Assembly (NCBI GenBank): GCA_002269645.1
Contig: NIVC01001100.1
Location: 186,001 to 250,000, forward strand
Source of the DNA: Macrostomum lignano
Taxonomy: Eukaryota
Reading direction: 5' to 3'
DNA length: 64,000 nucleotides
Shown here: positions 3,767-52,659 of the stretch, one piece after another
Position numbering within the stretch: the stretch's first letter is position 1
How the letters are laid out: the number at the start of each line of letters is the position of its first letter
The notes under the pieces: generated by a model
The model's database searches: none
Told to the model about the DNA's origin: nothing
Seen by the model: only the letters and a program-made list of their open reading frames with translations
Translations under genes and position numbers: made by a program

Positions 3767-6700
3767 GTGAATTCGGTCAAGATGTCGTTCATGCTGGCGG
3801 CGCATCAGCAGGAGGTTGAGAAATGGCTGCAGGACAACCGAGATGACGTGGAGTCAGCCGCCATCGGCTGCACTCACCAGGCGCTGCTGGTTCAGCAAAC
3901 CAAGCAGGCGGTCCTGCTGGAGGAGATCCAAGCGCTTGAGAGCAGGCTGGACGAGTCCAACAAGTCAGCGGCAGCGTCCCTCACCAAGCTGAAGGCAATG
4001 GAGAGTCAGATTGGCGTGAACCAGCAGGCGCTGACTTACCTTCAGCAGGTGACGTCGCTTGAGACGGCATTCGTGTCCACGGGTCAGAAAGTGATGGAGA
4101 AGGCACTGCAGATGTCCAAAGTGACCGATGGAGTCGTCCTGGAAGCTAAGAAGGTGAGAAAAGAGCCTTCATTTTATTGACAGTACATGAACGAGTCAAG
4201 GACAACTGAAGCAACGTCTATACAGGACGCTGCACTCGAAATCGATGGAAAATGTTTTGAAGGCCACTTTTTGCCGAAAAATACACTACGGAGATAGGAA
4301 GTTTTAATTTTTTAAGCTTTAGCTTCAGCTTCGTGCAGAAAATTAGAATTTACTAGCAATCTAGTGCGGCCCCCCTTCGGGGCGCCCAATAAGAAAGGAG
4401 CAAAAATAGTTCATGGAAAACAATAAAAAAACACATTTTCTTAAACACTAATTCCTTCTTCACATTTTAAAAATCACCTTATTCGTGTAAAATTGTCACG
4501 GACTAAGATGTTTGCAAAATTAAAAAATCACTTTTTCTCTAAAATTAACAAACAGTCAACAAAATATCGTTTCACTAAATAGAAAATATTCCCAAGACAG
4601 CAAGCAACCCCCTCCAAAAGTGAACAATCGCAGATAGCAAGCATCCTCTAATGCTCATAGCAAGAATCACCACAGATAGCAAGCATCTGCAGATTAGCAA
4701 GCACCCCCCAGATATTATAGAAGCATCCACCCAGATAGCAAGCATCCTGCAGATAGCAAGAATCCCTAAATAGCAAGCATCCTGCAGATAGCAAGAATCC
4801 CTGAATAGCAAGCATCCCTGGATAGAAAGAATCCCATGCATGTAGCCAGTACCCCCTCTCCCAAATAGCAAGTATCCCCCCTCGAGAGCAAGCATCCACG
4901 AGACAGCAAGTAGCTAGTGCAAATGTTACTTCCGCTAATGCAATAATCGCTTTCTCAGGTTGTGCAACAATCCACGTCTCAGCGAGCGCAATAATCTCTT
5001 TTTTAGACAGCGCAGTAATCAGCTTCTCAGCTAGTGCAATAATCCTTGGTTTATTAATAGCAATAATCCTTGATTAATCAAGTGCAATAATCCTTGGTTT
5101 ATCAAGTGCAATAATACTTGGTTTATCAAGTGCAGTAATCTTTGGCTTATCAAGTGCAATAATCCTTGGTTTATCAAGTGCAATAATCCTTTGTTTATCA
5201 AGTGCAATAATCCTTGGTTTATCAAGTGCAATAATCCTTGGTTTATCAAGTGCAATAATCCTTGGTTTATCAAGTGCAATAATCCTTGGTTTATCAAGTG
5301 CAATAATCCTTGGCTTATCAACTGCAATAATCCTTGGTTTATCAAGTGCAATATTTGTTTATCAAGTGCAATAATCCTTGGTTTATCAAGTGAAATAATC
5401 CTTGGTTTATCAAGTGCAATAATCCTTGGCTTATCAACTGCAATAATCCTTGGTTTATCAAGCGCAGTAATCTTTGGCCTATCAAGTGCAATAATCCTTG
5501 GTTTATCAAGTGCAGTAATCCTTGGCCTATCAAGTGCAATAATCCTTGGTTTATTAAGTGCAATAATCCTTGGTTTATCAAGTGCAATAATCCTTGGTTT
5601 ATCTAGCGCAGTAATCCTTGGCTTATCAGGTGCAATAATCCTTGGTTTATCAAGTGCAATATTTGTTTATCAAGTGCAATAATCCTTGGTTTATCAAGTG
5701 AAATAATCCTTGGTTTATCAAGTGCAATAATCCTTGGCTTATCAACTGCAATAATCCTTGGTTTATCAAGCGCAGTAATCTTTGGCCTATCAAGTGCAAT
5801 AATCCTTGGTTTATCAAGTGCAATAATCCTTGGTTTATCAAGTGCAATAATCCTTGGCTTATCAACTGCAATAATCCTTGGTTTATCAAGTGCAATAGTC
5901 CTTGGTTTATCAAGCGCAGTAATCCTTGGCCTATCAAGTGCAATAATCCTTGGCTTATCAAGTGCAATAATCCTTGGTTTATCAAGTGCAATAATCCTTG
6001 GTTTATCAAGTGCAGTAATCCTTGGCCTATCAAGTGCAATAATCCTTGGTTTGCCAAGAGCAATAATCCTTAGTTTATCGAGTGCAGTAATCCTTAGTTT
6101 TCCAAGTGCAGTAATCCTTGGTTTATTAAGAGCAATAATCCTTGGCTTATCGAGTGCAGTAATCCTTGGTTTGCCAAGAGCAATAATCCTTGGTTTATCA
6201 AGTGCAATAATCCTTGGTTTATCAAGTGCAATAATCCTTGGTTTATCAAGTGCAATAATCCTTGGTTTATCAGATGCAATAATCCTTGGCTTATCAACTG
6301 CAATAATCCTTGGTTTATCAGATGCAATAATCCTTGGCTTATCAACTGCAATAATCCTTGGTTTATCAAGTGCAATAATCCTTGGTTTATCAAGCGCAGT
6401 AATCTTTGGCCTATCAAGTGCAATAATCCTTGGTTTATCAAGTGCAATAATCCTTGGTTTATCAAGTGCAATAATCTTTGGTTTATCAGATGCAATAATC
6501 CTTGGCTTATCAACTGCAATAATCCTTGGTTTATCAAGTGCAATAATCCTTGGCTTATCAAGTGCAATAATCCTTGGTTTATCAAGCGCAGTAATCTTTG
6601 GCCTATCAAGTGCAATAATCCTTGGTTTATCAAGTGCAGTAATCCTTGGCCTATCAAGTGCAATAATCCTTGGTTTATCAAGTGCAATAGTCTTTGGTTT

Positions 6701-12700: not shown

Positions 12701-15700
12701 TTTTTTACATGACGCTTCTATGATTTTTACATGACGCTTCTATGATTTTTTACATGACGCTTCTATGATTTTTACATGACGCTTCTATGATTTTTACATG
12801 ACGCTTCTATGATTGTTTACATGACGCTTCTATGATTGTTTACATGACGCTTCTATGATTGTTTATATGACGCTTCTATGATTGTTTACATGACGCTTCT
12901 ATGATTTTTACATGACGCTTCTATGATTGTTTACATGACGCTTCTATGATTTTTTAAATGACGCTTCCATGATTGTTTACATGACGCTTCTATGATTTTT
13001 TACATAACGCTTTTTTATGATTGTTTACACGACGCTTCTATGATTGTTTACATGACGCATCTATGATTGTTTACATGACGCTTCTATGATTGTTTACATG
13101 ACGCTTCTATGATTTTTTTAAATGACGCTTCTATGATTGTTTATATGACGCTTCTATGATTTTTACATGACGCTTCTATGATTTTTACATGACGCTTCTA
13201 TGATTGTTTACATGACGCTTCTATGATCGTTTATATGACGCTTCTATGATTGTTTATATGAAGCTTTTATGATTTTTTACATGACGCTTCTATGACTTTT
13301 TAGATGACGCTTCTAGGATTGTTTACATGACGCTTCTATGATTTTTACATGACGCTTCTATGATTGTTTACATGACGCTTCTATGATTTTTACATGACGC
13401 TTCTATGATTGTTTACATGACGCTTCTATGATCGTTTATATGACGCTTTTATGATTGTTTATATGACGCTTTTATGATTTTTTACATGACGCTTCTATGA
13501 TTTTTACATGACGCTTCTATGATTTTTTACATGACACTTCTATGATTTTTACATGACGCTTCTATGATTGTTTACATGACGCTTCTATGATTGTTTACAT
13601 GACGCTTCTATGATTGTTTATATGACGCTTCTATGATTTTTTACATGACGCTTCTATGATTGTTTACATGACGCTTCTATGATTGTTTACATGACGCTTC
13701 TATGATTTTTTAAATGACGCTTCCATGATTGTTTACATGACGCTTCTATGATTTTTTACATAACGCTTTTTTATGATTGTTTACACGACGCTTCTATGAT
13801 TGTTTACATGACGCATCTATGATTGTTTACATGACGCTTCTATGATTGTTTACATGACGCTTCTATGATTTTTACATGACGCTTCTATGATTTTTTACAT
13901 GACGCTTCTATGATTGTCTACATATCGCTTCTATGATTGTCTACATGACGCTTCTATAATTGTTTACATGACGCTTCTATGATGTTTATATGACGCTTCT
14001 ATGATTTTTTACATGACGCTTCTATGATTTTTACATGACGCTTCTATAATTGTTTACATGACGCTTCTATGATGTTTATATGACGCTTCTATGATTTTTA
14101 CATGACGCTTCTATGATTTTTACATGACGCTTCTATGATTTTACATGACGCTTCTATGATTTTTTTAAATGACGCTTCCATGATTGTTTACATGACGCTT
14201 CTATGATTTTTACATGACGCTTCTATGATTTTTTACATGACGCTTTTATGATTTTTTACATGACGCTTCTATGACTTTTTAGATGACGCTTCATGATTGT
14301 TTACATGACGCTTCTATAATTTTATACATGACGCTTCTATAATTTTTACATGACGCTTCCATGATTTTTTAGTTTTCTTGGCGTTAAAAAACTTTAATTA
14401 AAAAAACTCTCTAAAAATTCGAACCATCGTCCCTGCATTTAGCAGTCAGTCTGTTTACCTCTAGGCTAGCTCTCATCGTTTTGATAACATCAAATTTTGC
14501 ACTTATATAACTCAACACTTTTAAATCCAAGCATAGAGTAAATCACACGAAGCAGTTATGACATAATCAGTTTCTCACTCAGTCAGTATCAGTTAACAAT
14601 ATGGTTACGCAATTTAAATCAAGTCTGGTGCTACGCTTCCACACTGCATTTTCAATTCAAGTCGGAGTTACAATTCAGTTATGATGCAATCTATTTCAGA
14701 ATCAGAATTCAACCAGTCAGTTTTTTCTCTAGCATTCTTACAATGCATTTCAAGTCGAAAAGTTTGCTTGACCTTTGCAAAAAAGCATGTTTTTCGAATA
14801 TTTAATCCCTTTAACATGGAGCAATTTCTTAGCCAAGATGCATGTACCGTCCCAGGAAAATTTCTGATCGAACAGTGCAAGTCTCATGAAAATCGGTTAA
14901 GCCATTTTTTCTCTAATCGATTACAAGCAAGCAAGCAAGCAAGATTTTCATTTTTAGTATATAGGATGTTATTTTTCATTCTGCGTACAACTGCTCGTGT
15001 CCTGTGCCTAAAAATCATAAAAATGGCACGGCTCGGCTCATTGGTTTTATTAATCTATTTTAGCATTCTTAGCTGACTGTGTAACAATATGTGTATCAGG
15101 GGTGATAAAATAGATTCATATACGACTCGTAACCAAAGATTCGATAACATAGAATCGTAATTTCCTAAAACTTCCTAAAACTCTTCCTAAAATCCTAAAA
15201 CTTCCTATCTTCGTAGTGTATTTTTTGACGAAAAGTGGCCTTCAAAACATTATCCATAGATTTCGAGTGTTGCGTCCTTCTACTCTAGTAGTCCTTTGAA
15301 CGAGTATGCTTGAGCAATGAGCAGCTATTAAATTTGAACCCAACACATATCAATAAGACATAAGTAGTTTTTACCGGCGACATTTTACATCGTGCCAGAT
15401 AAAAACTTTATATAGTAAATTAAAATGCATTTTTTTGTTTGAAGTTGGAGTTAGAAGAGCGTAAAATCTGGAATTGAGTGTAATAGTGTAAGCAGCAAGA
15501 ATCTGAACTTCTAGGTGTATATGCATCAAACCTCGAAAATATTTCCTCCCAGGAGCTGTCGGCCGAGGTCCACGGCACCTGGAGCTGGGTGAGCCAGCTG
15601 GCCGACCTGAACCGGCTCCACACCCGCAACGCCGGGGACTACCAGGCCTTCCATCACAGCGCCTACGAGCTCAACGCCATGCTGAACAGCCGAGCCAGCA

Positions 15701-18700
15701 GCAGCAGCTCCGCCATTGCCGCCATTCCCGCCAACGGGATGCTGGGCTCCATCAAGCGCATAAACACCGTGCTCACTGTAAGTAACCTCTTGTCAATTTC
15801 AGTACTCAAATCGCACACTTCAAAAGTAAAAGCCTCCTCGAACCTCTGCAGGACAACTTGGCCCAGTTCAACCGGCTGTGGCAGCTGTCAGTCGACCTGA
15901 CGCAGCGCAGCCGAGCTGTGGTGCCGCTGCACCTGCGTTTCAGCACTGACGCCATCCCGTTCGCGGGCAAGAACGTGTTCAAGTTCGATGACGGCGAGGT
16001 AAGTGCCAACTGTATTGCAGAGTGAATTGCATATTTGATGGCGCTCGCCCCATCATATTCGGACACCTACGAGTGGAAGTTGCGCCTGAAAACCTCTGCA
16101 CACTACTGACTGAGTAGTGAGGAGAGAAAATGAAGTATGAAATTTAGAATACCGATAAATGGCGATAATAAATATGAGTGTCTTAGAATGTGTGTACGGT
16201 TGTAACCCTGAATTTTAAGGGACCGCACTATGTTTGCTGGTGTAGTCCTGGCTGTAGGGACCGGTCCTATTGCTATCTTATTCTTCTGTCTCTCTCTTTG
16301 ACGATGGTACCAATCGTCTATGCTTCTAATCAAGTCGAATTAAGTCGAAGGTTCGGTAAGTTTCTCTCGATCTTCAACCCTCAACGCGGATGTTTATTTC
16401 TATTCCTGATGGTTGCAATTTCAATAGATAATGAGCATGCAAATGATTTAAGCAATTTAGTGGAATGAAAAAGGGCTACTTATCTATACTGGTGTTCTTC
16501 GATCTTGACGTCTCTAGATGGTCTCTAGATCTACTTATCTATACTGGTGTTCTTCGATCTTGACGTCTCTAGATGCTCTCTAGATCTACTTATCTATACT
16601 GGTGTTCTTCGATCTTGACGTCTCTAGATGGTCTCTAGATCTACTTATCTATACTGGTGTTCTTCGATCTTGACGTCTCTAGATGGTCTCTAGATCTACT
16701 TATATATACTGGTGTACTTCGATCTTGACGTCTCTAGATGGTCTCTTTGTTAGATCGGGATGGAGTCTCGGCTCGATTCAGATGAAGTTGTTTCCTTGTC
16801 GGTTTTTTTGAGTCTTTTAGTGACGTTGGATGAGAACTCTGGATGGAGGGCGGAGTAGGAGTAGAGGAGTAGCTGGAGCAAAAGGAGGAGCAAGAGAAGG
16901 CGGGAAAAAGGAGGCGGGAGCTTTATTTTCACTGAACGCTAGTATTAGTAGTATATATATGATTTCTATAACGCCATATATATATGGTGTTGGCTTCCCG
17001 CAATAGGATCTTTATTGCCGCAGAAGCATGCGCTGTACTTTCCAGATAGAAAAACTTTCAAGGTTCGCATTAGACTCAAAAATAGCATTGGGCATAACAT
17101 GTATAAATTAAGATCAATGCACTAATTTTTCTCCTATACATTAAAATCCAGGCCTTCTGAGCTGCGCATTTGCCAGTATTTAACTAAACATTTACACAAA
17201 AACTACTACCGTACCGTACCGACCTCTCCCCCCACAGACGGTCCTGGAGCCGGGAGAGCAGGTGACTGTCATCGACAACTCTCAGTCCTACAGGTGGACG
17301 GTGAGGCGCTCGGACGGAAGCGAGGTCGAAGTGCCCAGCACCTGCATCTGGCTGCCGCCGGCCGATCCGCAGGCAGTGGAGCTCGCTATCGGGTTTGTGG
17401 GGCTTTTGACAGAACTGGCATTTATCTCATTGTCTTTTTTATTTTGTCAAAGCCTCATGTTTATTTATTTATGAAAGTGGCTTATATAGTAAAATATAAA
17501 CATCACAAGTGACGATAAGGACAAACATCTCTGCACATTTTGCCACTCCCTGGCTCTTTGGGAATCGAATTTCTTCCGTTTACAGGCTGAGAAGAAAGCT
17601 TCTGAACACCTGGTCTCAGGTTCTGAACCAACTGCGTCAATGGAGTGCCGAGTTCTTTGATTCCTATCTGAGCCGCATGATCCAGAACCCAGTGGTGAGT
17701 AATATTACACTTTTTATACCTACGTGTAAAGTTTGCGGCCTCTTTTCATCGTTTTTTGAATACCAAAACACAGGTAGAAGTTGTTATCGGAATAAATCGT
17801 TTTTAAAGTTTAATTCTCAGCCAAATAGTTGAACTTCCTTCATCAGATGATCAGCTCAAAAATCAAAGACGGATCTCTCGCGTTCTTCGAGAGGTTGCGC
17901 CTGTCCAGCCGCACCTTCTTGGGCGTCAACGATCAGCAGGCAGAGCGCATTGACAGGTCCATTGGCAAGGTGCTTGACAGGATTACAATAACCGGTGCGT
18001 GTTGGATAAATTTGCTGGGTTTTGCTTTAAACATTGCAGCCAGTTCAGTTTAGACTTCTGTGATAGAGCTATGTTTTTCGGGATTTGAATTTTCCGTACA
18101 ACATTTCAAATTGATATTGTTTGTTTTAATTCACCAAAGCAGACATGCAGACCTTTGATACGATTTTTTAGATGGCCCGATGGACTATTTAGTTGAGAGC
18201 GAGCTAGTCGTCCTGCAGACGTGCCTGATGAAGCTGGAAGAGCACCTGAACCAGTGGCGCCATTGCTCAAGAGAAGCTTTCGAAGCCGAAAATCAGGAGC
18301 GAAGTCAGACTGACCTATCTAAGGAATCCTCGGAGGTCCTGGCACGCATTGAACTGCTTTCGTAAGTCTAATGGACTTAAAAAAATTTTCATGTATTTTA
18401 AACCTAATAAAATATTAGGTACTCAGGATTTTTTATTTAGGAATAGGAACATGTCGACCATGGTATGGCATGACTCGTCAGTTGTGTTGTACCCATGGAT
18501 GAAGGAATAGAAAGGATCGCTGATCTGAAAGCGAGTCTATGGCCAATGCAGTACTTCCTAAAAGTTGGGATATTCCCCTCATGAATTTCATTGGCTGCTG
18601 GAATTTAACAATAGACCCCCCTAAGTTCTTACTGGCTGAAGCTTGTACGCGAGGGAAATTCCAAAGTCACGATTAACGTTAGACATTAATAACTGCTTTT

Positions 18701-21700
18701 TTCCTCTGGGCCACGACGGCTTAAGGGATTTAGAACAAGAGAAAAAGTTATCTACGAGTAGTATGTTAGTGTTACAGCCTAGCATGCGCGTTAATCGTGA
18801 ATTCCCCCGCATACAAGCTTCAGCCATTAAGAACTTAGGGGGGACTATTATTCAATTCCGGCAGCCAATGAAATTAATTGGGGGGGAAATCCCAATTTTC
18901 AGGAAGTCTTGGCCATAGACTCGCTTTCAGATGAGCGATTCTTTCTATTCCTTCATCCATGGTTGTACCCCCCCCCGGGCTGCCTAGCTGGGAGACACCC
19001 AGGTCCCGCCTATTCCTGTCCCTAACGCTGCAAGAGTTCACAGCGGCCTCGAGCTGGCGAAAGTTCACCGGCCCGACCTCTGGGTTCACAGTAGTTCACA
19101 GTAAGTTCACAGTAAAACTTCCGGCTGGCAAAAGTTCTCTTGTCGGCCCCTGAACACTGCGAGAGTTCACAGTATAGCTCGATCCCCGCGCGGCACCCCG
19201 GAAGGAAATGAGACTCACACCTGCAGTTCGATCCAGCTCCAACAACATGCGGTATACCCCGAACTGAACGTTACGTGTGTGTATTGATATTAACTGCACT
19301 GCCGTCAGCGGGACAAGGGGGGGACGGGACGGGGCGGGGGGCGCGCATTAAATAGCAAGGCAAAAGGGGGAGGAGGTAGACAGACAGACAATAAGCAAGT
19401 ACAAACCACCCTGCGGCCAGCCAATCACAAGCCGCCAGCCGGGGGAGGGGTGGAGCAAATTGAGACGGCCCGCGCACGAGACCGGCCAGACTAGGGAGAG
19501 ACTTAAGCCCCCAAATCCCAGCCCGACCGGGGGGGGGAGAGAAAGAGAGAGAGAGAGAAAAGGGCCGGGAGGGTGAAGCCCTCGCAGACGCAGCACTGCA
19601 CAACAGTTATTAGCTTTTAACTGGTTTATCAAGCATAAAGCAATGCTTTCTGGAGAATTTCTTAGTCGTAAGGTCCAGTTAGTTTCATTGATAAGACAGA
19701 ACTTAATTACATAAATAGCTCGAGCACTAATCATGAATTATTTTGTAATGGCTATTGGAGGACTACTTTCATAAGAACCGCCACGGCAACCCGAATTCAA
19801 CGGGTATTCATACGCTCGTGCCGAAAATGCATAAAAATACTTGTAGAGAATCAAAGATTCTTTCGTGAAAGCCATCTCTGTACTTTAAAAGTAAGGATAG
19901 ATGAAACAGAGGCAAATTCTGCGATACTATGAAATAGAAGCACCTAAACGTGGCATGAATTTGTTGAACTTGCAGACAGCTGCAAAAGGAGTCACAGTCT
20001 CAGTTCCGTGACCTGCAGCGAAGCATTTCTAATTGGAGGCTTCAAGATGTGGCGTCGAAGTTCCAAGTCACCAAGGTAATTAATATTTAAACTGCATGCT
20101 GTAGCTTCATTGGCTTTATTCAAGTCAGCTAATCGGTATGTTTTACTTCGATCCCACAGATTTCGCGACAGCCGCTGTTCTACGACAAATCATCGCTTTC
20201 CGTAATGGACAGCGTCACAAGAGCGTCGGGGAAATCGGAAGAGAGACAGACAGCAGAGTGGCGGCTGATTGGAACAATCCAAGGGAGAGCAGAAGGAAAC
20301 TCAGCGGTGAATGTGACAGCAAGCGGTTGTCACGCATCTACAAATCAATATCACATTGGATTCAAATCTGCAGAAGAAGTAACAAGCTCGAGAGCTGCCG
20401 TATACAGGTCTGAAGAGAGACCAAAATCAGAAAGTAAAAAGATTCAAGTAGTTTCTAGCGGCTGTCATAAAGAAATTTTGCCAAGTAAAGAGCCAGACAC
20501 TTCGTCGCAGGACTTCCAAGCGTTGGTGCTGAAGTACGTTGAACAGCACAAGTCGGAATTCTTCGCCATATTTGCTACATGGAGCGACTTTCAAGCAGAA
20601 ATTCGTCGCTACGTACGCGAGCATGCTTGGGAGTTTTCTGATATCTTCTCCTGGAGCGGGTTCAGCGACCAAGTTCGAAAGCACGTTTTGGAGCACAAAG
20701 AGGAATTCATTGCGCTGCTTGGCCTAAACAAAGAAGTGAACGTAGAGCGACGCATTACACTTAAAAGGCCACCAGTGCAAGTGTCGCAAACTCAGTGCTG
20801 GAGAGAGATCAAAGAAAGTGAATCTGCTGTCAGTTTTGAACAAAGACAACAAAAACCTGCAATTTCAGTCACAGAAGCCTACAGAGAACAAGCCGATAAG
20901 AAGACTGAACTGAAGAGTGCAGGATGCTTCATAGAAAAAGTCTTCGTCAGTGCCAAAGTTCAGAAAACAACCCCAGAGCTAATAATATTTTCTCACGGGG
21001 CATTCAAAGAACGCACATTTTCTACCGCAAGCATCAAAGTCGAAAACAAGTCGAACACAACCGGAAGTGGGTGCTACTCAGAGTGGCAATTATCGGAAAA
21101 ATCGGTTTACTTCAAAGAGACTATAAAACAAAATGTAACTTCCTGCCATTCCGAAACACAGTATCAGGACTCTCGAGCCAAATTCGATATTTCAAGTCCA
21201 AAAATAAGCGCAAGCGGCTGTTTCAAGCAAATCACGCTCGAGCCGGCTTCCGTGACGTGCGATTGGAGGCCGAAATATGACAACTCCGGCTGCTACTACG
21301 AGACAAGTTACCAAGCCAGTAGCGCAAAGTTCATCTTACCGGCGCCAACGCTTACCGCAAGCGGCTGTTTCAAGCAAATCACGCTCGAGCCGGCTTCCGT
21401 GACGTGCGATTGGAGGCCGAAATATGACAACTCCGGCTGCTACTACGAGACAAGTTACCAAGCCAGTAGCGCAAAGTTCATCTTACCGGCGCCAACGCTT
21501 ACCGCAAGCGGCTGTTTCAAGCAAATCACGCTCGAGCCGGCTTCCGTGACGTGCGATTGGAGGCCGAAATATGACAACTCCGGCTGCTACTACGAGACAA
21601 GTTACCAAGCCAGTAGCGCAAAGTTCATCTTACCGGCGCCAACGCTTACTGCAAGCGGCTGTTTCAAGCAAATCACGCTCGAGCCGGCTTCCGTGACGTG

Positions 21701-24700
21701 CGATTGGAGCCGAAATATGACAACTCCGGCTGCTACTACGAGACAAGTTACCAAGCCAGTAGCGCAAAGTTCATCTTACCGGCGCCAACGCTTACCGCAA
21801 GCGGCTGTTTCAAGCAAATCACGCTCGAGCCGGCTTCCGTGACGTGCGATTGGAGGCCGAAATATGACAACTCCGGCTGCTACTACGAGACAAGTTACCA
21901 AGCCAGTAGCGCAAAGTTCATCTTACCGGCGCCAACGCTTACTGCAAGCGGCTGTTTCAAGCAAATCACGCTCGAGCCGGCTTCCGTGACGTGCGATTGG
22001 AGGCCGAAATATGACAACTCCGGCTGCTACTACGAGACAAGTTACCAAGCCAGTAGCGCAAAGTTCATCTTACCGGCGCCAACGCTTACCGCAAGCGGCT
22101 GTTTCAAGCAAATCACGCTCGAGCCGGCTTCCGTGACGTGCGATTGGAGGCCGAAATATGACAACTCCGGCTGCTACTACGAGACAAGTTACCAAGCCAG
22201 TAGCGCAAAGTTCATCTTACCGGCGCCAACGCTTACTGCAAGCGGCTGTTTCAAGCAAATCACGCTCGAGCCGGCTTCCGTGACGTGCGATTGGAGCCGA
22301 AATATGACAACTCCGGCTGCTACTACGAGACAAGTTACCAAGCCAGTAGCGCAAAGTTCATCTTACCGGCGCCAACGCTTACCGCAAGCGGCTGTTTCAA
22401 GCAAATCACGCTCGAGCCGGCTTCCGTGACGTGCGATTGGAGGCCGAAATATGACAACTCCGGCTGCTACTACGAGACAAGTTACCAAGCCAGTAGCGCA
22501 AAGTTCATCTTACCGGCGCCAACGCTTACCGCAAGCGGCTGTTTCAAGCAAATCACGCTCGAGCCGGCTTCCGTGACGTGCGATTGGAGGCCGAAATATG
22601 ACAACTCCGGCTGCTACTACGAGACAAGTTACCAAGCCAGTAGCGCAAAGTTCATCTTACCGGCGCCAACGCTTACCGCAAGCGGCTGTTTCAAGCAAAT
22701 CACGCTCGAGCCGGCTTCCGTGACGTGCGATTGGAGGCCGAAATATGACAACTCCGGCTGCTACTACGAGACAAGTTACCAAGCCAGTAGCGCAAAGTTC
22801 ATCTTACCGGCGCCAACGCTTACCGCAAGCGGCTGTTTCAAGCAAATCACGCTCGAGCCGGCTTCCGTGACGTGCGATTGGAGGCCGAAATATGACAACT
22901 CCGGCTGCTACTACGAGACAAGTTACCAAGCCAGTAGCGCAAAGTTCATCTTACCGGCGCCAACGCTTACCGCAAGCGGCTGTTTCAAGCAAATCACGCT
23001 CGAGCCGGCTTCCGTGACGTGCGATTGGAGCCGAAATATGACAACTCCGGCTGCTACTACGAGACAAGTTACCAAGCCAGTAGCGCAAAGTTCATCTTAC
23101 CGGCGCCAACGCTTACCGCAAGCGGCTGTTTCAAGCAAATCACGCTCGAGCCGGCTTCCGTGACGTGCGATTGGAGGCCGAAATATGACAACTCCGGCTG
23201 CTACTACGAGACAAGTTACCAAGCCAGTAGCGCAAAGTTCATCTTACCGGCGCCAACGCTTACCGCAAGCGGCTGTTTCAAGCAAATCACGCTCGAGCCG
23301 GCTTCCGTGACGTGCGATTGGAGGCCGAAATATGACAACTCCGGCTGCTACTACGAGACAAGTTACCAAGCCAGTAGCGCAAAGTTCATCTTACCGGCGC
23401 CAACGCTTACCGCAAGCGGCTGTTTCAAGCAAATCACGCTCGAGCCGGCTTCCGTGACGTGCGATTGGAGGCCGAAATATGACAACTCCGGCTGCTACTA
23501 CGAGACAAGTTACCAAGCCAGTAGCGCAAAGTTCATCTTACCGGCGCCAACGCTTACTGCAAGCGGCTGTTTCAAGCAAATCACGCTCGAGCCGGCTTCC
23601 GTGACGTGCGATTGGAGGCCGAAATATGACAACTCCGGCTGCTACTACGAGACAAGTTACCAAGCCAGTAGCGCAAAGTTCATCTTACCGGCGCCAACGC
23701 TTACCGCAAGCGGCTGTTTCAAGCAAATCACGCTCGAGCCGGCTTCCGTGACGTGCGATTGGAGGCCGAAATATGACAACTCCGGCTGCTACTACGAGAC
23801 AAGTTACCAAGCCAGTAGCGCAAAGTTCATCTTACCGGCGCCAACGCTTACTGCAAGCGGCTGTTTCAAGCAAATCACGCTCGAGCCGGCTTCCGTGACG
23901 TGCGATTGGAGGCCGAAATATGACAACTCCGGCTGCTACTACGAGACAAGTTACCAAGCCAGTAGCGCAAAGTTCATCTTACCGGCGCCAACGCTTACCG
24001 CAAGCGGCTGTTTCAAGCAAATCACGCTCGAGCCGGCTTCCGTGACGTGCGATTGGAGGCCGAAATATGACAACTCCGGCTGCTACTACGAGACAAGTTA
24101 CCAAGCCAGTAGCGCAAAGTTCATCTTACCGGCGCCAACGCTTACTGCAAGCGGCTGTTTCAAGCAAATCACGCTCGAGCCGGCTTCCGTGACGTGCGAT
24201 TGGAGGCCGAAATATGACAACTCCGGCTGCTACTACGAGACAAGTTACCAAGCCAGTAGCGCAAAGTTCATCTTACCGGCGCCAACGCTTACTGCAAGCG
24301 GCTGTTTCAAGCAAATCACGCTCGAGCCGGCTTCCGTGACGTGCGATTGGAGGCCGAAATATGACAACTCCGGCTGCTACTACGAGACAAGTTACCAAGC
24401 CAGTAGCGCAAAGTTCATCTTACCGGCGCCAACGCTTACTGCAAGCGGCTGTTTCAAGCAAATCACGCTCGAGCCGGCTTCCGTGACGTGCGATTGGAGG
24501 CCGAAATATGACAACTCCGGCTGCTACTACGAGACAAGTTACCAAGCCAGTAGCGCAAAGTTCATCTTACCGGCGCCAACGCTTACTGCAAGCGGCTGTT
24601 TCAAGCAAATCACGCTCGAGCCGGCTTCCGTGACGTGCGATTGGAGGCCGAAATATGACAACTCCGGCTGCTACTACGAGACAAGTTACCAAGCCAGTAG

Positions 24701-27228
24701 CGCAAAGTTCATCTTACCGGCGCCAACGCTTACCGCAAGCGGCTGTTTCAAGCAAATCACGCTCGAGCCGGCTTCCGTGACGTGCGATTGGAGGCCGAAA
24801 TATGACAACTCCGGCTGCTACTACGAGACAAGTTACCAAGCCAGTAGCGCAAAGTTCATCTTACCGGCGCCAACGCTTACCGCAAGCGGCTGTTTCAAGC
24901 AAATCACGCTCGAGCCGGCTTCCGTGACGTGCGATTGGAGGCCGAAATATGACAACTCCGGCTGCTACTACGAGACAAGTTACCAAGCCAGTAGCGCAAA
25001 GTTCATCTTACCGGCGCCAACGCTTACTGCAAGCGGCTGTTTCAAGCAAATCACGCTCGAGCCGGCTTCCGTGACGTGCGATTGGAGGCCGAAATATGAC
25101 AACTCCGGCTGCTACTACGAGACAAGTTACCAAGCCAGTAGCGCAAAGTTCATCTTACCGGCGCCAACGCTTACCGCAAGCGGCTGTTTCAAGCAAATCA
25201 CGCTCGAGCCGGCTTCCGTGACGTGCGATTGGAGGCCGAAATATGACAACTCCGGCTGCTACTACGAGACAAGTTACCAAGCCAGTAGCGCAAAGTTCAT
25301 CTTACCGGCGCCAACGCTTACTGCAAGCGGCTGTTTCAAGCAAATCACGCTCGAGCCGGCTTCCGTGACGTGCGATTGGAGGCCGAAATATGACAACTCC
25401 GGCTGCTACTACGAGACAAGTTACCAAGCCAGTAGCGCAAAGTTCATCTTACCGGCGCCAACGCTTACCGCAAGCGGCTGTTTCAAGCAAATCACGCTCG
25501 AGCCGGCTTCCGTGACGTGCGATTGGAGGCCGAAATATGACAACTCCGGCTGCTACTACGAGACAAGTTACCAAGCCAGTAGCGCAAAGTTCATCTTACC
25601 GGCGCCAACGCTTACTGCAAGCGGCTGTTTCAAGCAATCATCTTACCAAAGCTCTGCTGCTATATTTGTGCCAAAAGTCGATGTAACTGCGTCGGGCTGC
25701 CTTAAAGAGCTTTCATTTGATAATTCGTCGGTGACAGCGACCGCAAATGTGACAGTCGCTGCCTCTGGATTCTTTAGTGAGTCCTCTTTCTCATCTTCGG
25801 TCGTCAAATTTACTGATGTTTCAACAAAAGTTTCTGCTTCTGGTTGCTTCCATGAAGAATCCTCTAAGTCTGAGATGGCTTCAAGTGGATGTTTCAAGGA
25901 AATTCAGAGGAGCACATCGTCTGCAAGATTTCTCTTCCAACTGCCAACTACGGCATCCGGAACGTTCAACGAGCGAGTCGCTGTTGAAGAGTTAAAAATA
26001 AGCACACCGCCTTCTATGCCAGTCGTACGAAGCATGCCAATCGTTGATTCGGGCTGCGAGTTCGTTGGATCGACTGCTGAACTCATTTCAGAAAGTCGCG
26101 CTGACGAAAGACAAGTTCAGCAGCAGCACAGTAGCAGCATGTAAGTTTCGTGGATTATGGGTTCCTATTGAATACTTCAATTCTAAGTTTCTTTTTCGTT
26201 TCCGAACGTTCCTCACAACACGCGAGATTTTGCATTTTAGATATGCACTAAGCGTCGGTCAGAGCAGTTCTGCCAGTAGGGCGACCAGGACCTCCGAGGC
26301 GCAGACTGATTTGAACTACAAGTCCGCATTGTGGAACATGTTTGTATTGAAGAACGGTCGCGTTGACGTCAACCTCTCCTTCATAGTTTCGTATTTCGGA
26401 GTCGAAGCTTTCGCTCGCGAGTACATGTTACTTCGCGAATTTCGAAACGTTGCAACGCAAGTTGGCGAAGGAGGGGAAGTCGGATTCGCGACGGCGTCAT
26501 CCAGAAGCGCCAATCTCATTCAGAGCAGGTCGTTTGAGTCGCAGTCGAGTGCTTCTCGTGTCTATGGATCTGGTGTTGTCAACATTGGTGGATCTAGCGG
26601 TGGGATGTTAGACCTTTCTGATACGAACACCAGCAGGATCTCGACTATCCAGAGACAGTCATCCGGAACATCTGGAGTCGTGAGGATTAATGGAAGCAAC
26701 GAGTTTACGTCATTTGGCTCACGAACAGAATCGGTTCCTGGTGGTATCCAGGGAGTTGCATCTGGAGATACTAGATCAAGTGTAGTCAGCATTGGCGGAT
26801 CAGACGGTGAAATGTTGGACCTGTCCAGTTCGTTCGCCACCAGGCTTCCATCAGTCCAGAGACAAATAGAATTTAATAATTTTTCTGGTGCACATGCCGA
26901 TGTTTCCGACCTGTCCGGTGTGATCAGTTCTGCAAGCGGTACGTCTGCTATTCAGCGGCAGTCGTCAGGCCGTTCAGGTGAAAGGATCGTGACGCAGAGC
27001 AGCGGCAGCGGCATCGTCAATATGTCTGAGACGGTCAGCTCCGGTTCGCGAGGCTTCGCAGTGTCTGGGGACGGCCTGTCCAGCGTTTACCGATCGGTCT
27101 CTGGAATCGACGGCTCTGATGGCAGTGTGCAGGCAGCCCTGGCCTCCATGGTGAGCGTAGGCGAAAGTAACAGCGGCATTACTCGACTCTCCACCCTGGA
27201 GGGTCGCATGCTGAACCTGTCCGACTAG
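3767..27228 (+). CDS. Plakin-family cytolinker (spectrin repeats plus SH3 plakin domain) with giant tandem-repeat exon and Ser/Gly-rich tail; 5'-incomplete, about 2780 aa in window
   Basis: Phase-consistent GT-AG exons: 3767-4153, 15553-15777, 15852-15998, 17238-17392, 17586-17694, 17847-17969, 18219-18361, 19976-20075, 20160-26140, 26241-27228. TWSWVSQL..LH...Y.AF matches the plakin QWSWILQ..HL...Y.QFF motif. RSRAVVPL followed by VIDNSQ..W.V...G.E.EVPS.C.WLPP matches the plakin SH3. Three 1-bp deletions interrupt the repeat exon. Confidence 0.85.
4630..4915. repeat. Degenerate (AGATAGCAAGCATCCC)-type short tandem repeats inside Helitron A
   Basis: Recurrent TAGCAAGCATCC motif. Confidence 0.8.
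5030..7578. repeat. 24-bp satellite (AATCCTTGGTTTATCAAGTGCAAT)n, about 105 units
   Basis: Direct tandem array; source of the LHLINQGL/SSAIILGL ORFs. Confidence 0.97.
7651..7713 (-). other. tRNA-like (A-box/B-box) segment inside the Helitron 5' arm; homologues at 14416-14474 and about 59640-59705
   Basis: Minus strand GAGAGCTAGCCTAGAG...GACTGCTAA...GGTTCGAATC followed by a T-run; T-stem incomplete, so not an intact tRNA. Confidence 0.5.
8537..8955. repeat. Interstitial (CCCTAA)n telomere-like tracts (8537-8622 degenerate; 8884-8955 near-perfect)
   Basis: CCCTAACCCTAACCCTAA runs within Helitron B. Confidence 0.85.
9830..14365. repeat. 22-23-bp satellite (CATGACGCTTCTATGATT(G/T)TTTA)n, about 200 units
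   Basis: Direct tandem array; short copies also at 8395-8470 and a decayed array at 58960-59583. Confidence 0.97.
16476..16746. repeat. 55-bp intronic minisatellite, about 5 copies
   Basis: Units start at 16476, 16531, 16586, 16641, 16696 (CTACTTATCTATACTGG...TCTCTAGAT). Confidence 0.95.
18485..19605 (-). mobile_element. Solo LTR (TGTTGTG...GTACAACA), interrupted by a MITE
   Basis: Same termini as the LTR at 35616-36484; ATTGG, GC-rich boxes and a TATTTAA element inside; flanks GTTG/GTTA (3 of 4 match). Confidence 0.6.
18494..18961. mobile_element. 468-bp MITE with about 130-bp TIRs (CATGGATGAAGGAATAG...), P- or hAT-like
   Basis: 8-bp TSD GTTGTACC at 18486-18493 and 18962-18969; inverted arms 18494-18625 and 18835-18961. 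Confidence 0.85.
21210..25637 (+). repeat. Coding tandem repeat: 30 x 147 bp (49 aa, ASGCFKQITLEPASVTCDWRPKYDNSGCYYETSYQASSAKFILPAPTLT)
   Basis: 25617 minus 21210 = 4407 = 30x147 minus 3; lies within exon 20160-26140. Confidence 0.97.
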
Positions 27229-28620: not shown

Positions 28621-31600
28621 ATGTCGTCGCTGTCAAAGAAGAGCGCCTACAATAGCCCGGGCGAGAGGGAGCGGCACCGAAGAGAACTGTCTTCTCTGCT
28701 AGACATTGCTGGCGTGGAATACCGGTTCGTGCTGTTTCGCGGCGTTCCCGTGTGCCCTTTTCCCGGAGTAAAGAGGCGCGTGCAGGTAACCGAATGTTTT
28801 TCAGATTGATGCCAACATGCCGCGTCGTCTGCCCCCAGTCTAGTGAAAATGGCGTGTCGTGTACCGTATTTTACTTATAAGACACATTTTATCATAGACA
28901 GGATGGATGTACACAACCTGGCGCACTTTAAGCGACATTGTCACACAACCGGCGAGAGGCATTGCTGCCCATTCCGCCGACTCCCCTGAGCAGGCGCACA
29001 AGCGCGCGGATACGTACGCAGTCATACGCACAGGCACACACTCACACAGGATTGTACATCGGCCCTAACTTTATTTATCGTTAGGCATGTACACTTCACT
29101 GTGCATTGGGGGTTGGCTTTCAAGGGCGTTAACTGCACGAGCAGAGCCAAGCCGAGATTCCAATTTAGTCCCAAATTAAGAGTTTTAGGCCTAAGATTTT
29201 AGGCCTAAGATGAACATGCAATGACAGCGTGATTCTGATAGCTATTGTGCCTAAATGTAGGAGATGCAGATATCCATCAGACTCACAGGTTTGGAGTGAG
29301 GCTCTTGGGTTTTGGGTGAGACTCTTAGGTTTGCAGTTATTGATTTTTCAGTAAGACTCATAGCTTTGCAAATTTTGTTAAAAGTCAAAACTGACCTTGA
29401 CTTTGTAGTGCATATTCTTTTTGATTAAACAACTTTGCAGACCTACTGGGATAGCTTCCGGCCGAGACAGTCAGATGTGTGGGTGTGCACGTTCGTCAAG
29501 TCCGGCACACACTGGGTGAACGAAATAGCTCACATGCTGCTCAGGGTAAGCACCAGGTCCGCGTGTCGTGTGAATTTTACTGGGTAAAAGCGTCCTTCTA
29601 TTTTAGCTGTCCATGTCTGATGCTCCTCTGAACTGAACTCACTATTCAGGGCAGCACGGAGGCACCCAAAGCCAAGGAGGAGTTCATGCTGGAACGAGTC
29701 GACTGCCAATTGCTGCAGAATCTGCCCAGCCCGAGGCTGATGAACACACACCTACACTGCAGCCAGCTGCCCGAGCAGATCCTCTCCGCCAGGAAAGGAA
29801 AGATCATCTTCGTCACCAGAGACGTCCGCGATGTGGCCGTTTCTTTGTTCCACCACCAGCGAACCCGAGCTGCTGACAACCTGACTCGATACGACACTAC
29901 CTGGCAGGCCCATCTCGACACATTCTGCAAGGGACTTTCGCAAAACGGCTCCTGGTTTGATTACATCAAGGTTTGCCAATACTGGTTGTTACCGCACGTA
30001 TGCTTAGGATCAGATTTGTGCGTTCTACAAGAAATTTGTCTGGAAAAGTGAGTCTAGGACCGGTTTCTGAGTTCGTTTCCATACGAAGTTCGGAACCCTT
30101 GTGCACTAAAATTGGCCCAGGACTTCTAGTGCGATTCGCACCACAGAGTGTACATGTGCACACACCCCTGAGTGTGTACCTCCATTGGTATGCGTGAGCG
30201 TGCTCAGGTGTCAACGGAATGGGCTTGGCATGACTGACTGACTTTCTGTGGAAATGACCTATGATGTACGTTTGGGACTCTCACTACTGTGCCTCTGTTT
30301 ATGATCTCTAGTACCAGTATTAGAGCCAAATAACTGAGTCATTTGACTTCTCCTGATGATACAATCACAAGGGTCTTTCTAATGTGGAGACGTTTCCGTT
30401 AAGCATTACGGTCCTGCTTCCTAATGGCTGAGACTGAGGTTCAGCAGTTCATTGGTTGGTAATGCATTCAAAACTGGATAGAATTTTTATTAGAGGCAGG
30501 GGGTTGTGTGCACCCTGGCGCACTTTAAGCGACATAGGCACACAACCGGCGAGAGGCATTACTGCCCATTCCGCCGACTTCCCTGAGCAGGCATACAAGC
30601 GCGCGGATACGTACGCAGGCACACACTCACTCAGGAGTGTACAGCGGCCCTAACTTTATATTATCGTTAGGCATGTACACTTCACTGCGCCTTGGGGGGT
30701 TGGCTCTCAAGGCCGTTAATTGCACGAGCAGAGCCAAGCCGAGATTCCAATTCAGCCCCAAATTAATGTGACTGCACTTGGAATCGAGCCTGGGTCGCTG
30801 GCACACCAGAGCCTGCGCTAGACCGCTGGGCTACGGCCCCCCAAAACTGCATTCAAAACTGGATAGAAACTTCAGGGCCGAAAAAATAGATCACTACAGT
30901 GTGACACCAGGTTTCACCAAAAGGAAAGTAAGCATTGCTTTTAGTTAAGTTGCCGACACCAACATCAACTCTCAACTTTGAAGGGTTGGCACGAAGGATG
31001 TCTCAAACAACAGCCAGACAATGTGCTGCACCTCACTTACGAAGGCATGCTGGCCGACCATCGAGGAGCCATCGACAGTTTGGCCAGCTTCCTCCTGACC
31101 CCGGAGCAGCGCTGCCGGCTCGACGAGGCCTTCATGAAACGGGTGCAACAGCTCACCGAGTTTGAGCACATGCGCCAAGCTCACTCTGGCAAGACGGCAA
31201 TAGAGATCTATCGGAATGGGAAGGTGGTTAACATGTCTAATCCTAGCTTACATAGGATTTTAAGAAATTCAAAGTTGAGTAGAAAATTCGGAAAACTTCT
31301 AAAACTCCATCATCTCTAGATTTATTGACCCGTCTTCCATCATCTCTAGATTCCTTGACACCGTCTCCCAGTCCCATCATCTCTAGATTCCTTGACACCG
31401 TTTCCCAGTCCCATCATCTCTAGATTCCTTGACACCGTCACCCATCATCTCTAGATTCCTTGACACCGTCACCCATAATCTCTAGATTCCTTGACACCGT
31501 CTCCCAGTCCATCATCTCTAGATTCCTTGACACCGTCACCCATCATCTCTAGATTCCTTGACACCGTCACCCATAATCTCTAGATTCCTTGACACCGTCT

Positions 31601-32163
31601 CCCAGTCCCATCATCTCTAGATTCCTTGACACCGTCACCCATCATCTCTAGATTCCTTGACACCGTCTCCCAGTCCCATCATCTCTAGATTCCTTGACAC
31701 CTTCTCCCATCATCTCTAGATTCCTTGACACCGTCTCCCATCATCTCTAGATTCCTTGACACCGTCTCCCATCATCTCTAGATTCCTTGACACCGTCTAC
31801 CATCATCTCTAGACTCCTTGACACCGTCTCCCATCATCTCTAGACTCATTGACACCGCTCCCATCATCTCTAGACTCATTGACACCGTCTCCTATCATCT
31901 CTAGACTGCTTGACAGCATGAATCGTTGGCGAAAGCAATCAAATTGTGTTACAAATTTTCTCAAGTAATGTTCGAGTATCTTCTCAACCGAATCCCCCAT
32001 CAAGTTTTAAGAAAGTTCGAATCAATATTTTTAGACCGGCAGCTGGCGAGGCCAGTTCTCCGAGCTGGACTTGTTCGACCTTCGCGCCAGGCTGTTCGAC
32101 CCGCTCAGCCCTGAGGACCAGAGCCTGTTTCTGCACTACTCAAGCATGACCAGCTGGGCCTGA
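28621..32163 (+). CDS. Cytosolic PAPS-dependent sulfotransferase (SULT family), 5 exons, about 319 aa
   Basis: Exons 28621-28785, 29441-29545, 29650-29970, 30984-31223, 32035-32163, all phase 0. Motifs: DVWVCTFVKSGTHW (5'-PSB), NTH, TRDVRDVAVS (3'-PB), GSWFDY, YE, RNGKTGSW (RKG..GDW). Confidence 0.92.
28915..29172 (-). mobile_element. 5'-truncated copy of the SINE at 30484-30847
   Basis: Colinear homology with 30515-30760; lacks the tRNA head. Confidence 0.75.
30484..30847 (-). mobile_element. Full-length tRNA-derived SINE
   Basis: Minus-strand head GGGGCCGTAGCCCAGCGG...GGCTCGATTCC (A/B boxes), TAATAAAAA tail, 21-bp TSD TGCATTCAAAACTGGATAGAA at 30463-30483 and 30848-30868. Confidence 0.9.
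31308..31912. repeat. 30-37-bp minisatellite (CATCATCTCTAGATTCCTTGACACCGTCTCC)n
   Basis: Direct tandem array in SULT intron 4; same family as 40735-41485. Confidence 0.95.
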
Positions 32164-33378: not shown

Positions 33379-47177
<13,799 letters not shown>

Positions 47178-48338: not shown

Positions 48339-48896
48339 ATGGGCGTCTGGCTATCAAAACTGCTGGAGAATTTCGCCGACGGCCCGCCGGCCCGGGTGCT
48401 GATGCTGGGCCTAGACGCGGCAGGCAAGACCACCATCCTGTACAAGGTGAAGCTCAACGAGACGGTCACCACAATTCCCACAATCGGCTTCAACGTTGAA
48501 GAGGTCAGGCCCTGCAAAGGCGTCAGCTTCACTGTCTGGGACGTCGGCGGCCAGGAACGGATCCGCGCCCTGTGGCGGCACTACTACCAGAACTCTGAAG
48601 GCCTGCTGTTCATCGTCGACTCCGCCGATCGCGAGAGATTCGCCGAGGCCCGCCAGGAGCTCCTGGGCGTGCTGGAGGCGGACGAGATGCGCCGAGTCCC
48701 TGTGGTGGTGGTCGCCAACAAGCAGGACCTGCCGCATGCCGTCAGCGTGTCGGAGCTGGCCGGAGCTCTGGGGCTACACAAGCTGACTGGCCGGCAGTGG
48801 CACATCCAGGGCGCCACGGCCACGACAGGCGACGGCATCTACGAATCCATGCATGAGCTCAGCCGGCTGGTCAAGGAGTTCCGGCGAACTCGCTGA
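48339..48896 (+). CDS. ADP-ribosylation factor family small GTPase, intronless, 185 aa
   Basis: MG start (myristoylation Gly2), [35 protein letters not shown]. Subfamily not assignable by eye. Confidence 0.95.
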
Positions 48897-49592: not shown

Positions 49593-50084
49593 TAGTCTAG
49601 CAAATATTTAACTTAATAATAATTAACAAGACATTTTGGAACCTGTGTACGAACTCTTTCACACCATACAAAGATGGTTTTCAGAATCTGCTTGTATTCC
49701 TTATCTTACGTTCCGCATAGCAACTAATGTATATTTAACTGTTTTCAAATACTAGATCGATTAATCACATATTACATGAAGCAAATAGAAATACAGCAAG
49801 TGTACATAAGCATAATTACAAAAGTACATTAGTATAATAAATATGATCAGTCTCATAATTTATATAGTACTTTTTTCGTGTATTTTTCATTAAGCGAAAG
49901 ACTCTCGGTGGGTTGGATTTTTCAAAGCAAGAATGAATTTAATGGGCGGAGAATCACACAAAGCATTCGCGATGATCAAACTCTATGAATGAAATCGAAT
50001 CAAATATATTCATTTTTGTGATGAGCAAAAATGTTACAGATGGCAACTTCTCTAATACTGCAGTTTGTAGACAGTAGATTTTGA

Positions 50085-51200: not shown

Positions 51201-51629
51201 ATACTCATAACAAATTTAGATGGCCCAATCGAGGTCAGACTTAATAGCAAAATGAATGGCCCTGACGACAGAAAGCAAGTCGCAAAATTGACAGAAACAA
51301 GAAAAAAATCCGGTGAGTCATGGAGACCCAGACCAACAAGCAACACAAGAACAATGCCAAGAACTCAGGGGGGAATCCGATGAATGAAAAATAAATGTTC
51401 GAATTCATGTTTAAACAAAACTGATACAAATTGCGCCTGCAGATTAAAAAACAAGCCCATTTTATGCGAAACCTGTAGACAGAAGACAGGTGTGAGCATA
51501 AATTTTTGAGCACTGTTGACCAAGCCTTGACATTAGGAAGGATTAGCAAAGAATCCCGAGGATTAGGGATAATTTATGGGTAATTCATTTAATTAAAAGG
51601 ATTAGCGAATAGTCCAGGAGATTAGCAAG

Positions 51630-52626: not shown

Positions 52627-52659
<33 letters not shown>

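Follow-up and report, generated by a model that had tools for sequence, protein, structure and literature searches.

A predicted Macrostomum lignano gene joining a short plakin head to a large exon of near-identical 49-amino-acid repeats

A stretch of 64,000 nucleotides (nt) from Macrostomum lignano (NCBI GenBank assembly GCA_002269645.1, contig NIVC01001100.1, positions 186,001 to 250,000 of the forward strand) was analysed around a gene which is predicted to encode a plakin-type head followed by a long repetitive tail. The whole of this stretch is referred to as the window, and positions are counted from its first letter. The gene was mapped by aligning P0001, the M. lignano prediction BOX15_Mlig010347g1 (PAA76993.1), to the window and picking GT/AG junctions, which gave ten exons in all with every splice site canonical, as follows (aa, amino acids):

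3782..4153, plus strand: exon 1, from the splice mapping of P0001; ATG at 3782, protein start MSFMLAAHQQEVEKWLQDNR..., where the plakin head begins
15553-15777, plus strand: exon 2, plakin head, GT/AG
15852-15998, plus strand: exon 3, plakin head, GT/AG
17238-17392, plus strand: exon 4, plakin head, GT/AG
17586-17694, plus strand: exon 5, plakin head, GT/AG
17847-17994, plus strand: exon 6, plakin head, GT/AG
18172-18361, plus strand: exon 7, plakin head, GT/AG
19976-20075, plus strand: exon 8, plakin head, GT/AG
20160..26140, plus strand: exon 9, the large exon, 5981 nt as assembled and 5984 nt with three missing G restored
21210..25616, plus strand: homogenised repeat array within exon 9, 30 units (27 of 147 nt and three of 146 nt)
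26241-27225, plus strand: last exon, 328 codons, with the TAG stop at 27226-27228; P0002 spans its junction

The 1446 nt of exons 1-8 lead into exon 9, the penultimate exon, in phase 0, and this exon is left after two bases of a codon. Its borders are canonical (cag/ATTTCG at 20160 and an AT/GTAAGT donor after 26140, the slash marking the border), and this donor together with the ttttag/A acceptor before 26241 recreates the junction ...HSSS-I-YALSVGQ of P0002, a 501-aa M. lignano UniRef fragment. Each junction is found in public gene models, that between 20075 and 20160 in P0001, P0013 and P0015 and that between 26140 and 26241 in P0002, in accordance with the exon borders and the in-phase splicing of head to large exon that had been proposed in the original prediction, a reading of this DNA made without database searches. 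The N-terminus, MSFMLAAHQQEVEKW, is the same as that of UniRef A0A1I8GPU6 (P0015), and the unique part of exon 9 is 99% identical to P0001 and P0002; the window is nuclear DNA of this flatworm. With the three G restored the protein has 2805 aa. The UniRef label of P0002, 'Fibronectin type-III domain-containing protein', was rejected, since Pfam gives it no support in the matching window sequence; an exact-sequence look-up of P0002 matched no contig.

The array in exon 9 was reported by Tandem Repeats Finder at 21209-25637 with a period of 147, 30.1 copies, 99% matches and a score of 8753, and an exact 27-nt anchor was found 30 times, from 21210 to 25470, and nowhere else in the window. The unit translates as ASGCFKQITLEPASVTCDWRPKYDNSGCYYETSYQASSAKFILPAPTLT, which is 49 aa long, contains 3 Cys, 4 Tyr and 1 Trp and would yield the tryptic peptides QITLEPASVTCDWRPK, YDNSGCYYETSYQASSAK and FILPAPTLTASGCFK; over 1470 aa the array totals 90 Cys, 120 Tyr and 30 Trp. 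The count of 30 units of 147 bp and the Cys, Tyr and Trp content given in the original prediction were reproduced exactly. Its statement that the units differ only by a synonymous ACC/ACT change (Thr) held for substitutions, C/T at unit position 147 being the sole one in the window array (T in 13 of the 30 units), but not for deletions, as three units lack a G. Each 49-aa unit consists of two subrepeats of ~24 aa, both starting SGC[FY], namely SGCFKQITLEPASVTCDWRPKYDN and then SGCYYETSYQASSAKFILPAPTLTA. Subrepeats were delimited by cutting exon 9 at every SG[C/F/T], and an alignment of 12 of them gave the consensus SGCFxExSxxxSxVxFxxxxxVTA.

Further copies of the locus were present on two contigs of the Mlig_3_7 assembly: NIVC01000773.1 (L001), which was obtained by an exact look-up of P0001 and is collinear with window positions 1-29324 at 96-99% identity, and NIVC01000460.1 (L003). 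The array copies are:

window 21210-25616: 30 units
L001 32932-39394: 44 units
L003 34865-43388: 58 units

These sizes are steps of exactly 14 units, which may be coincidence; no higher-order or 14-unit periodicity was seen in the C/T variant pattern along the arrays. Within the window, these two loci and L002 (described below), the 147-bp unit was confined to exon 9. Units are ~99.9% identical to each other, and the unique parts of exons 9 and 10 show 98.6-99.6% identity between locus copies, which is below the between-unit value. Together with the differing copy numbers, these comparisons support a very recent amplification and homogenisation of the 49-aa doublet, the latter having been proposed from the window alone. 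Elsewhere in the gene, ~10.6 kb of intron 1 (window 4352-14966) was found to be missing from both Mlig_3_7 copies, the flanks meeting at L001 25752 and L003 28246; this segment is largely composed of minisatellite arrays, e.g. 5074-7465 and 9847-10384.

Only one of the six reading frames is open across the units, the same one in which the 350 unique codons upstream and the 502 (174 + 328) downstream are read. The two other plus-strand frames contain one or two stops in each unit, and no open reading frame (ORF) of at least 100 aa lies on the minus strand beneath the array. When the window was compared with L001 over 1331 unique codons there were 0 indels and 0 stops, with 24.5 non-synonymous and 13.5 synonymous differences; the ratio of non-synonymous to synonymous differences per site (pN/pS) was ~0.55, and ~0.41 against the adjoining paralog A described below. 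In every coding array of the gene family the period is divisible by 3 (147, 72, 249 and 207 bp), in contrast to the nearby intronic and intergenic arrays, where it mostly is not (55, 31, 23, 22, 10, 11, 14 and 20 bp); the few non-coding arrays with such periods are of 12 and 30 bp, plus a 99-bp reading of the 31-bp array.

The 482 aa encoded by exons 1-8 form a series of spectrin-like repeats that contains an SH3 (aa 224-288). Over these same residues Pfam returned SH3_10 (PF17902, the plakin SH3) above its curated cut-off (expectation value, E, 1e-10), and a weak Spectrin match was seen in exon 1 (E 0.003). When the head was compared with the PDB by phmmer, only plectin 3pe0 (3e-8) and desmoplakin 3r6n (6e-8) were matched, at aa 126-315. 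An AlphaFold2 model of the head built from four family members (predicted local distance difference test, pLDDT, 66; predicted template modelling score, pTM, 0.51) showed long helices round a 4-5-strand SH3, and its sole significant Foldseek matches were desmoplakin spectrin repeats (SR) SR3-SR6 in 3r6n (6e-11, 348 aligned columns) and plectin SR4-SR5-SH3 in 3pe0 (4e-8). The arrangement that marks the plakin family, tandem spectrin repeats with an SH3 inserted in the central one, is therefore present, and the plakin identity first assigned from the sequence alone is confirmed. The head is a short or truncated plakin domain of ~4 spectrin-like repeats with the inserted SH3, equivalent to desmoplakin/plectin SR3-SR6, and is of the desmoplakin/periplakin type, which is without an actin-binding domain.

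No CH, EF-hand, GAS2 or plakin repeat was matched by Pfam in the gene, and the ATG at 3782 leads straight into the head. Of the features that distinguish spectraplakins (an N-terminal tandem CH that binds actin; a C-terminal EF-hand, GAS2 and GSR region that binds microtubules), the first three are thus lacking; GSR tripeptides were seen in a 69-aa unit of paralog A and in the last exon, with few in the window gene. Neither exon 9 nor the last exon contained a Plectin repeat (PF00681, 38 aa), the tail domain by which plakins bind intermediate filaments, at E up to 1-10. Plakin repeats are missing in some accepted plakins (periplakin, MACF1 isoforms), so their absence does not exclude membership of the family. 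A conventional rod was not found either, as Pfam gave no Spectrin or coiled-coil family after aa 482 and the units were modelled as all-beta. The predicted protein has no N-terminal hydrophobic signal peptide.

Three further elements surround the array in exon 9:

20494..20735 (approximate), plus strand: helical 'KYVEQHKSEFFAIFATWSDFQAEIRRYV...' module, a single copy with three ~27-aa subrepeats
20916..21209, plus strand: two old diverged 49-aa doublets (AGCFIEKVF..., SGCYSEWQL...SCHSETQYQDSRAKF...), adjoining the array upstream, in frame
25617..26140, plus strand: seven degenerate 15-31-aa SG[CFT] subrepeats (SGCFKQSSYQSSAAIFVPKVDVTA, SGCLKELSF..., SGFFSESSF... and others), downstream of the array and running to the exon end

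The last exon encodes a Ser/Gly-rich module (VNIGGS.G.MLDLS, FGSRTE). The tail is therefore modular, consisting of a helical WS.F module, an old array of ~24-aa SGCF subrepeats and a Ser/Gly-rich C-terminal module. The 24-aa subrepeats, the degenerate in-frame copies flanking the array and the existence of paralogs with differing amplified modules had all been overlooked in the original prediction. The window gene is paralog B of this family; large repeat regions of its two relatives were located as follows:

L001:13656-19925 and L003 ~10017 onward: paralog A, whose large exon is an intact 2089-aa ORF
L002:20187-34197: paralog D array, ~195 copies of a 72-bp unit, the ORF broken up by ~4% indels

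Paralog A (UniRef A0A1I8GR27) adjoins the gene in tandem, upstream, in L001 and L003, just beyond the 5' end of the window. Its head is 82% identical to that of the window gene, and the two genes share the linker (PQPLFYDKSSLS.M.SVT) and the set of modules, but paralog A differs in that the helical module is amplified ~9 times (249-bp/83-aa unit, 82-85% matches) and the Ser/Gly module 17 times (207-bp/69-aa unit, 96%), and no SGCF units were found in it. A Pfam 'VQ motif' and ~15 other matches on the 2089-aa ORF were discarded as repeated short-match artefacts. Paralog D is BOX15_Mlig024865g2 (PAA91320.1; P0007/P0012) on NIVC01000090.1 (L002). Its head is 37% identical to that of the window gene over the full length with short gaps only, and linker, module set and SGCF subrepeat are common to both; it differs in that a single 24-aa unit has been amplified ~195-fold, as a 72-bp unit, over 14 kb. 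Its tail passes from degenerate SG[VC][FY]RE repeats into an array of SGCFRETSYNESRVRFKEEIAVTG alternating with the variant REMSLNESRVQF, and UniRef A0A1I8I886 joins the gene to a retroelement (RNase H). A different tail module is amplified in each of the three paralogs.

The motif is kept across paralogs, as can be seen from SGCFRETSYNESRVRFKEEIAVTG of paralog D and SGCYYETSYQASSAKFILPAPTLTA of the window gene. Because it is shared with a paralog whose head is so diverged, and because degenerate in-frame units flank the array, the SGCF motif is, judged by these alignments, old in the family, and its protein sequence is conserved. Between paralogs A and B, the first three exons (window 3782-4153 and 15553-15998 against L001 10017-11319) are 94-100% identical, whereas later exons are ~70-84% identical, which suggests gene conversion at the 5' end; the near-identical 5' exons account for P0001 and P0013 fusing the first exons of A to the remainder of B. 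Word-indexed searches with the repeat exon, the head and a 4-sequence head profile returned M. lignano proteins only, with no orthologues by which to date the family, and literature searches found no paper on the gene or on any Macrostomum plakin.

It may be that the gene is real and the array translated, but that the amplification is functionless, a neutral by-product of a minisatellite-prone genome which is tolerated since the addition of 147 bp does not disturb the frame; on this view the length of the array would be without adaptive significance, and no defined rod would be required of the tail. Of the M. lignano assembly, 15% is tandem and simple repeats (PMC5730564), and both the window and the related loci are packed with tandem arrays. 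The variation in copy number between near-identical locus copies, the amplification of another module in each paralog and a pN/pS only moderately below 1 would also be expected on this account. It explains less well why the SGCF motif is conserved between paralogs with such different heads, and why the 2089-aa ORF of paralog A remains open through arrays of 82-96% identical units, which points to selection on the protein; that tail modules were amplified independently, and on a large scale, in three paralogs suggests, in addition, that long tails are favoured. A purely neutral origin is for these reasons considered unlikely, although of the alternatives it survives best.

As assembled, exon 9 is not an open frame, and in this respect the original prediction, which had the frame preserved, was not upheld. 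Units 4, 8 and 13 (starts 21651, 22238 and 22972) are 146 nt long, one G of TGGAGGCCG being missing from each, at ~21709, ~22296 and ~23030. The undeleted reading of the site in these units would be GGAGGCCG or GGAAGCCG; in unit 4 GGAGGCCG becomes GGAGCCG, and the same change is found in units 8 and 13. The frame accordingly shifts from 0 to -1 to -2 and back to 0, being broken from 21709 to 23030, where the third deletion restores it. The first stop is at 21840-21842, codon 1043 of the spliced coding sequence, and there are 15 in-frame stops in total. Ten 1-nt deletions were counted in the three locus copies, at unit position 59 three times in the window, at 99, 59, 146, 59 and 146 in L001 and at 146 twice in L003, with different units affected in each copy. 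The unit positions which vary by substitution in the three copies are 59 (G/A, Arg to Lys), 99 (T/C, synonymous), 128 (T/C, Leu to Ser) and 147 (C/T, synonymous), and all ten deletions fall at or beside 59, 99 or 147, i.e. three of the four variable sites; 99T, for example, is deleted in L001 unit 1 and replaced by C in L003 unit 1.

Short reads cannot be uniquely placed in near-identical arrays, and indels reach 4% in the paralog D array of the public assembly. The Mlig_3_7 assembly was produced from PacBio continuous long reads (CLR) with Canu and polished with short reads using Pilon (PMC5730564). Since the deletions sit at unit-variable sites, while the 1331 unique codons are without an indel, the three -1 frameshifts are most likely long-read consensus errors at places where reads from different units disagree.

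Were the frameshifts real, this copy, and perhaps all copies, would be a truncated gene or young pseudogene, the product of which would end at codon 1043 and comprise the head, the unique part of exon 9 and ~3.4 units, leaving 26 units and the last exon untranslated. The threefold occurrence of an identical deletion in the window would fit such a gene, as would the frame-breaking deletions in the other two copies (in L001 their sum is not a multiple of 3) and the fact that all public gene models end inside the array. Random decay, however, would be expected to strike the unique codons as well, none of which was hit, and the 502 unique codons downstream are open in the original frame in both the window and L001. 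The restriction of the deletions to sites at or beside unit variants, in different units in each copy, also argues for sequencing error, which this assembly technology is known to leave, as in the L002 array. Truncation is thus improbable.

An exhaustive HMMER search of exon 9 against 1.84 billion representative proteins found eight proteins, five from M. lignano and three weakly matching bacterial immunoglobulin (Ig)-repeat proteins. This supports the lineage restriction of the unit proposed in the original prediction, its only credible relatives apparently being those of M. lignano. Neither the window units nor the degenerate repeats had a credible Pfam match, and phmmer with four units gave 0 matches in the PDB at E up to 10, in line with the earlier view that the unit stands outside the known plakin-repeat classes. 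When five units were modelled with AlphaFold2 without an alignment, the best model was all-beta (pLDDT 73, pTM 0.66), and its non-significant Foldseek neighbours were beta-solenoid or functional-amyloid proteins; a beta-rich repeat is therefore suggested by the modelling, but not established.

Two sets of matches raised the question of whether the unit is a diverged form of a known repeat, either a BspA-type leucine-rich repeat (LRR_5, ~23-aa period) or a bacterial He_PIG/cadherin-like Ig repeat. Seven near-identical 24-aa units of paralog D score 45 bits against LRR_5 (PF13306; E 1e-11). The match was judged an artefact of accumulation over identical copies because it was lost with two units and with the degenerate repeats of paralog D; for all window-gene units LRR_5 gave nothing at E up to 10. 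Matches between the window units and the bacterial Ig-repeat proteins P0008-P0010 have E values from 7e-8 to 5e-5, but the similarity is at the level of a motif only: the alignments follow ~15 residues (F/C-DW-x-P-x-F/Y-xx-SG-x-Y) in every second unit, with a period of 94 aa against 49 aa, and the 25-28% identity seen by BLASTP between the window units and P0008 is driven by the DW.P.[FY]..SG.Y motif. No He_PIG or cadherin Pfam match was obtained at E up to 10, and derivation from either repeat is very improbable. The least probable explanation of all is that the array is an assembly artefact (a spurious expansion or mis-join) or an unrelated satellite or transposable-element insertion, for although its copy number differs in each assembled copy and the genome is notoriously hard to assemble, three independent contigs have it at one and the same site between the same flanks, diverged in-frame copies of the unit flank it, and the anchor is otherwise absent from the window.

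The region is accordingly read as the large penultimate exon of a genuine M. lignano protein-coding gene, one of a small species- or genus-restricted family with plakin heads; for this reading as a whole, including the nature of the product, the probability is put at roughly 0.6. The best-supported view of the product, on the sequence comparisons above, is a predicted lineage-restricted cytoplasmic cytolinker with a plakin head and a modular tail. In all characterised plakins the head docks proteins to membrane junctions or cortical complexes, and by analogy this head would dock the protein at a membrane junction or cortical complex. The 49-aa SGCF doublet would have been amplified and homogenised by unequal recombination to 30, 44 or 58 units, giving a conceptual protein of ~2800-4200 aa depending on the locus copy. 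The array may form a long beta-rich rod or spacer along which Cys and aromatic residues recur in a regular ladder, and such a rod could self-associate, or be cross-linked by disulfides or otherwise into an intracellular skeletal matrix; this is suggested by the predicted strands, the missing signal peptide and the even intervals between Cys and aromatic residues. The original prediction had likewise proposed a possible cross-linkable or filament-binding spacer in a junctional cytolinker.

A number of observations weigh against this reading. The public gene models are predictions only, each of them truncated or chimeric: P0001 and P0013 end at frameshifts and are chimeras of paralogs A and B, and P0012 is a chimera with a retroelement. 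The role given to the head is carried over from vertebrate plakins, with which the head shares only 14-21% identity, and a pN/pS of 0.4-0.55 indicates only moderate constraint. The three deletions in the window are identical, and it is conceivable that a real frameshift variant was spread by unequal exchange. Four of the five AlphaFold2 models of the units were poor (pLDDT 31-36), and Foldseek found no significant neighbour for the five-unit model (best E 0.012, template modelling score <0.2). Finally, given the repeat-prone genome, the amplification itself may be neutral.

A bolder extension of the cytolinker reading, which we regard as doubtful and place after the neutral account of the amplification but ahead of truncation, is that the SGCF arrays represent an unrecognised class of intracellular beta-rod (solenoid or stacked-hairpin) replacing the coiled-coil rod and plakin repeats. 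Anchored by the head, such rods would be zipped together, or cross-linked by disulfide or aromatic bonds, through the Cys/Tyr/Trp ladder to build a cell-type-specific skeleton, the mechanics of which would be tuned by array length. Candidate sites for a skeleton of this kind would be the epidermal terminal web, the tonofilament core of the adhesive-organ anchor cells and the intracellularly formed copulatory stylet.

Provided that the tail is translated, a conserved plakin head can be combined with a wholly new and fast-evolving class of repeat. The family also offers a natural example of module-specific runaway amplification, with different modules amplified in three paralogs and three array lengths at one locus. 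M. lignano is open to RNA interference, in situ hybridisation and transgenesis. On the side of annotation, the frameshifts that long-read assemblies leave in the arrays account for the truncated or chimeric state of the public models examined in this family.

Other features observed in the window, outside the plakin gene, were as follows:

~29455-30048, plus strand: sulfotransferase-like exons downstream of the plakin gene, syntenic with a Sulfotransfer_1 gene at L001 42343 onward
~38000-38745, plus strand: Tc1/mariner-type transposase-like fragments, identified by eye
48339-48896, plus strand: intronless 185-aa ORF resembling an ARF/ARL-type small GTPase (GLDAAGKTT...DVGGQ...NKQD)
56277-56849, minus strand: 190-aa ORF resembling ribosomal protein uL6 (RPL9)
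56232-56933, plus strand: 233-aa ORF, probably the antisense translation of the uL6-like ORF

Dense mini- and microsatellite arrays were also present at 1012-1545, 2300-2800, 16476-16746, 31307-31915, 44338-46270, 50000-51346, 52600-53150, 53625-54050 and 55600-56040. Periods of 55 and 31 bp were obtained for the two window arrays that were measured, the others being known as repetitive ORF translations, and most are not frame-preserving; in the related loci, arrays of a similar kind repeat every 23, 22 or 4 bp.

The predicted protein can be compared with three known systems. Beta-solenoid and functional-amyloid proteins (curli CsgA, FapC, the left-handed beta-helix) are alike in their ~24-aa period and predicted strands; proteins of the CsgA/FapC type are secreted and bacterial, whereas the window protein is from an animal and predicted to be cytoplasmic, and there is no significant sequence or fold match between them. 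Desmoplakin, envoplakin and periplakin resemble it in their spectrin-repeat/SH3 head, in having neither CH domain nor signal peptide, and in the use of one very large 3' exon for the tail. Relative to these vertebrate plakins, its head is about half the length, and the coiled-coil rod, plakin repeats, GAS2 and EF-hand are absent, with helical, SGCF and Ser/Gly modules making up the tail instead. Drosophila Shot and C. elegans VAB-10A are spectraplakins for which isoforms with a giant plakin-repeat exon are described (PMC2173965). The likeness here lies in the combination of a plakin head with a single huge tandem-repeat exon, which in their case belongs to a junction-associated cytolinker isoform. 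The Shot and VAB-10A exons encode canonical 38-aa plakin repeats, which are ancient and mutually diverged; the exon of the window gene, in contrast, is built from near-identical units of a new 24/49-aa motif which, in the databases searched, belongs to M. lignano alone.

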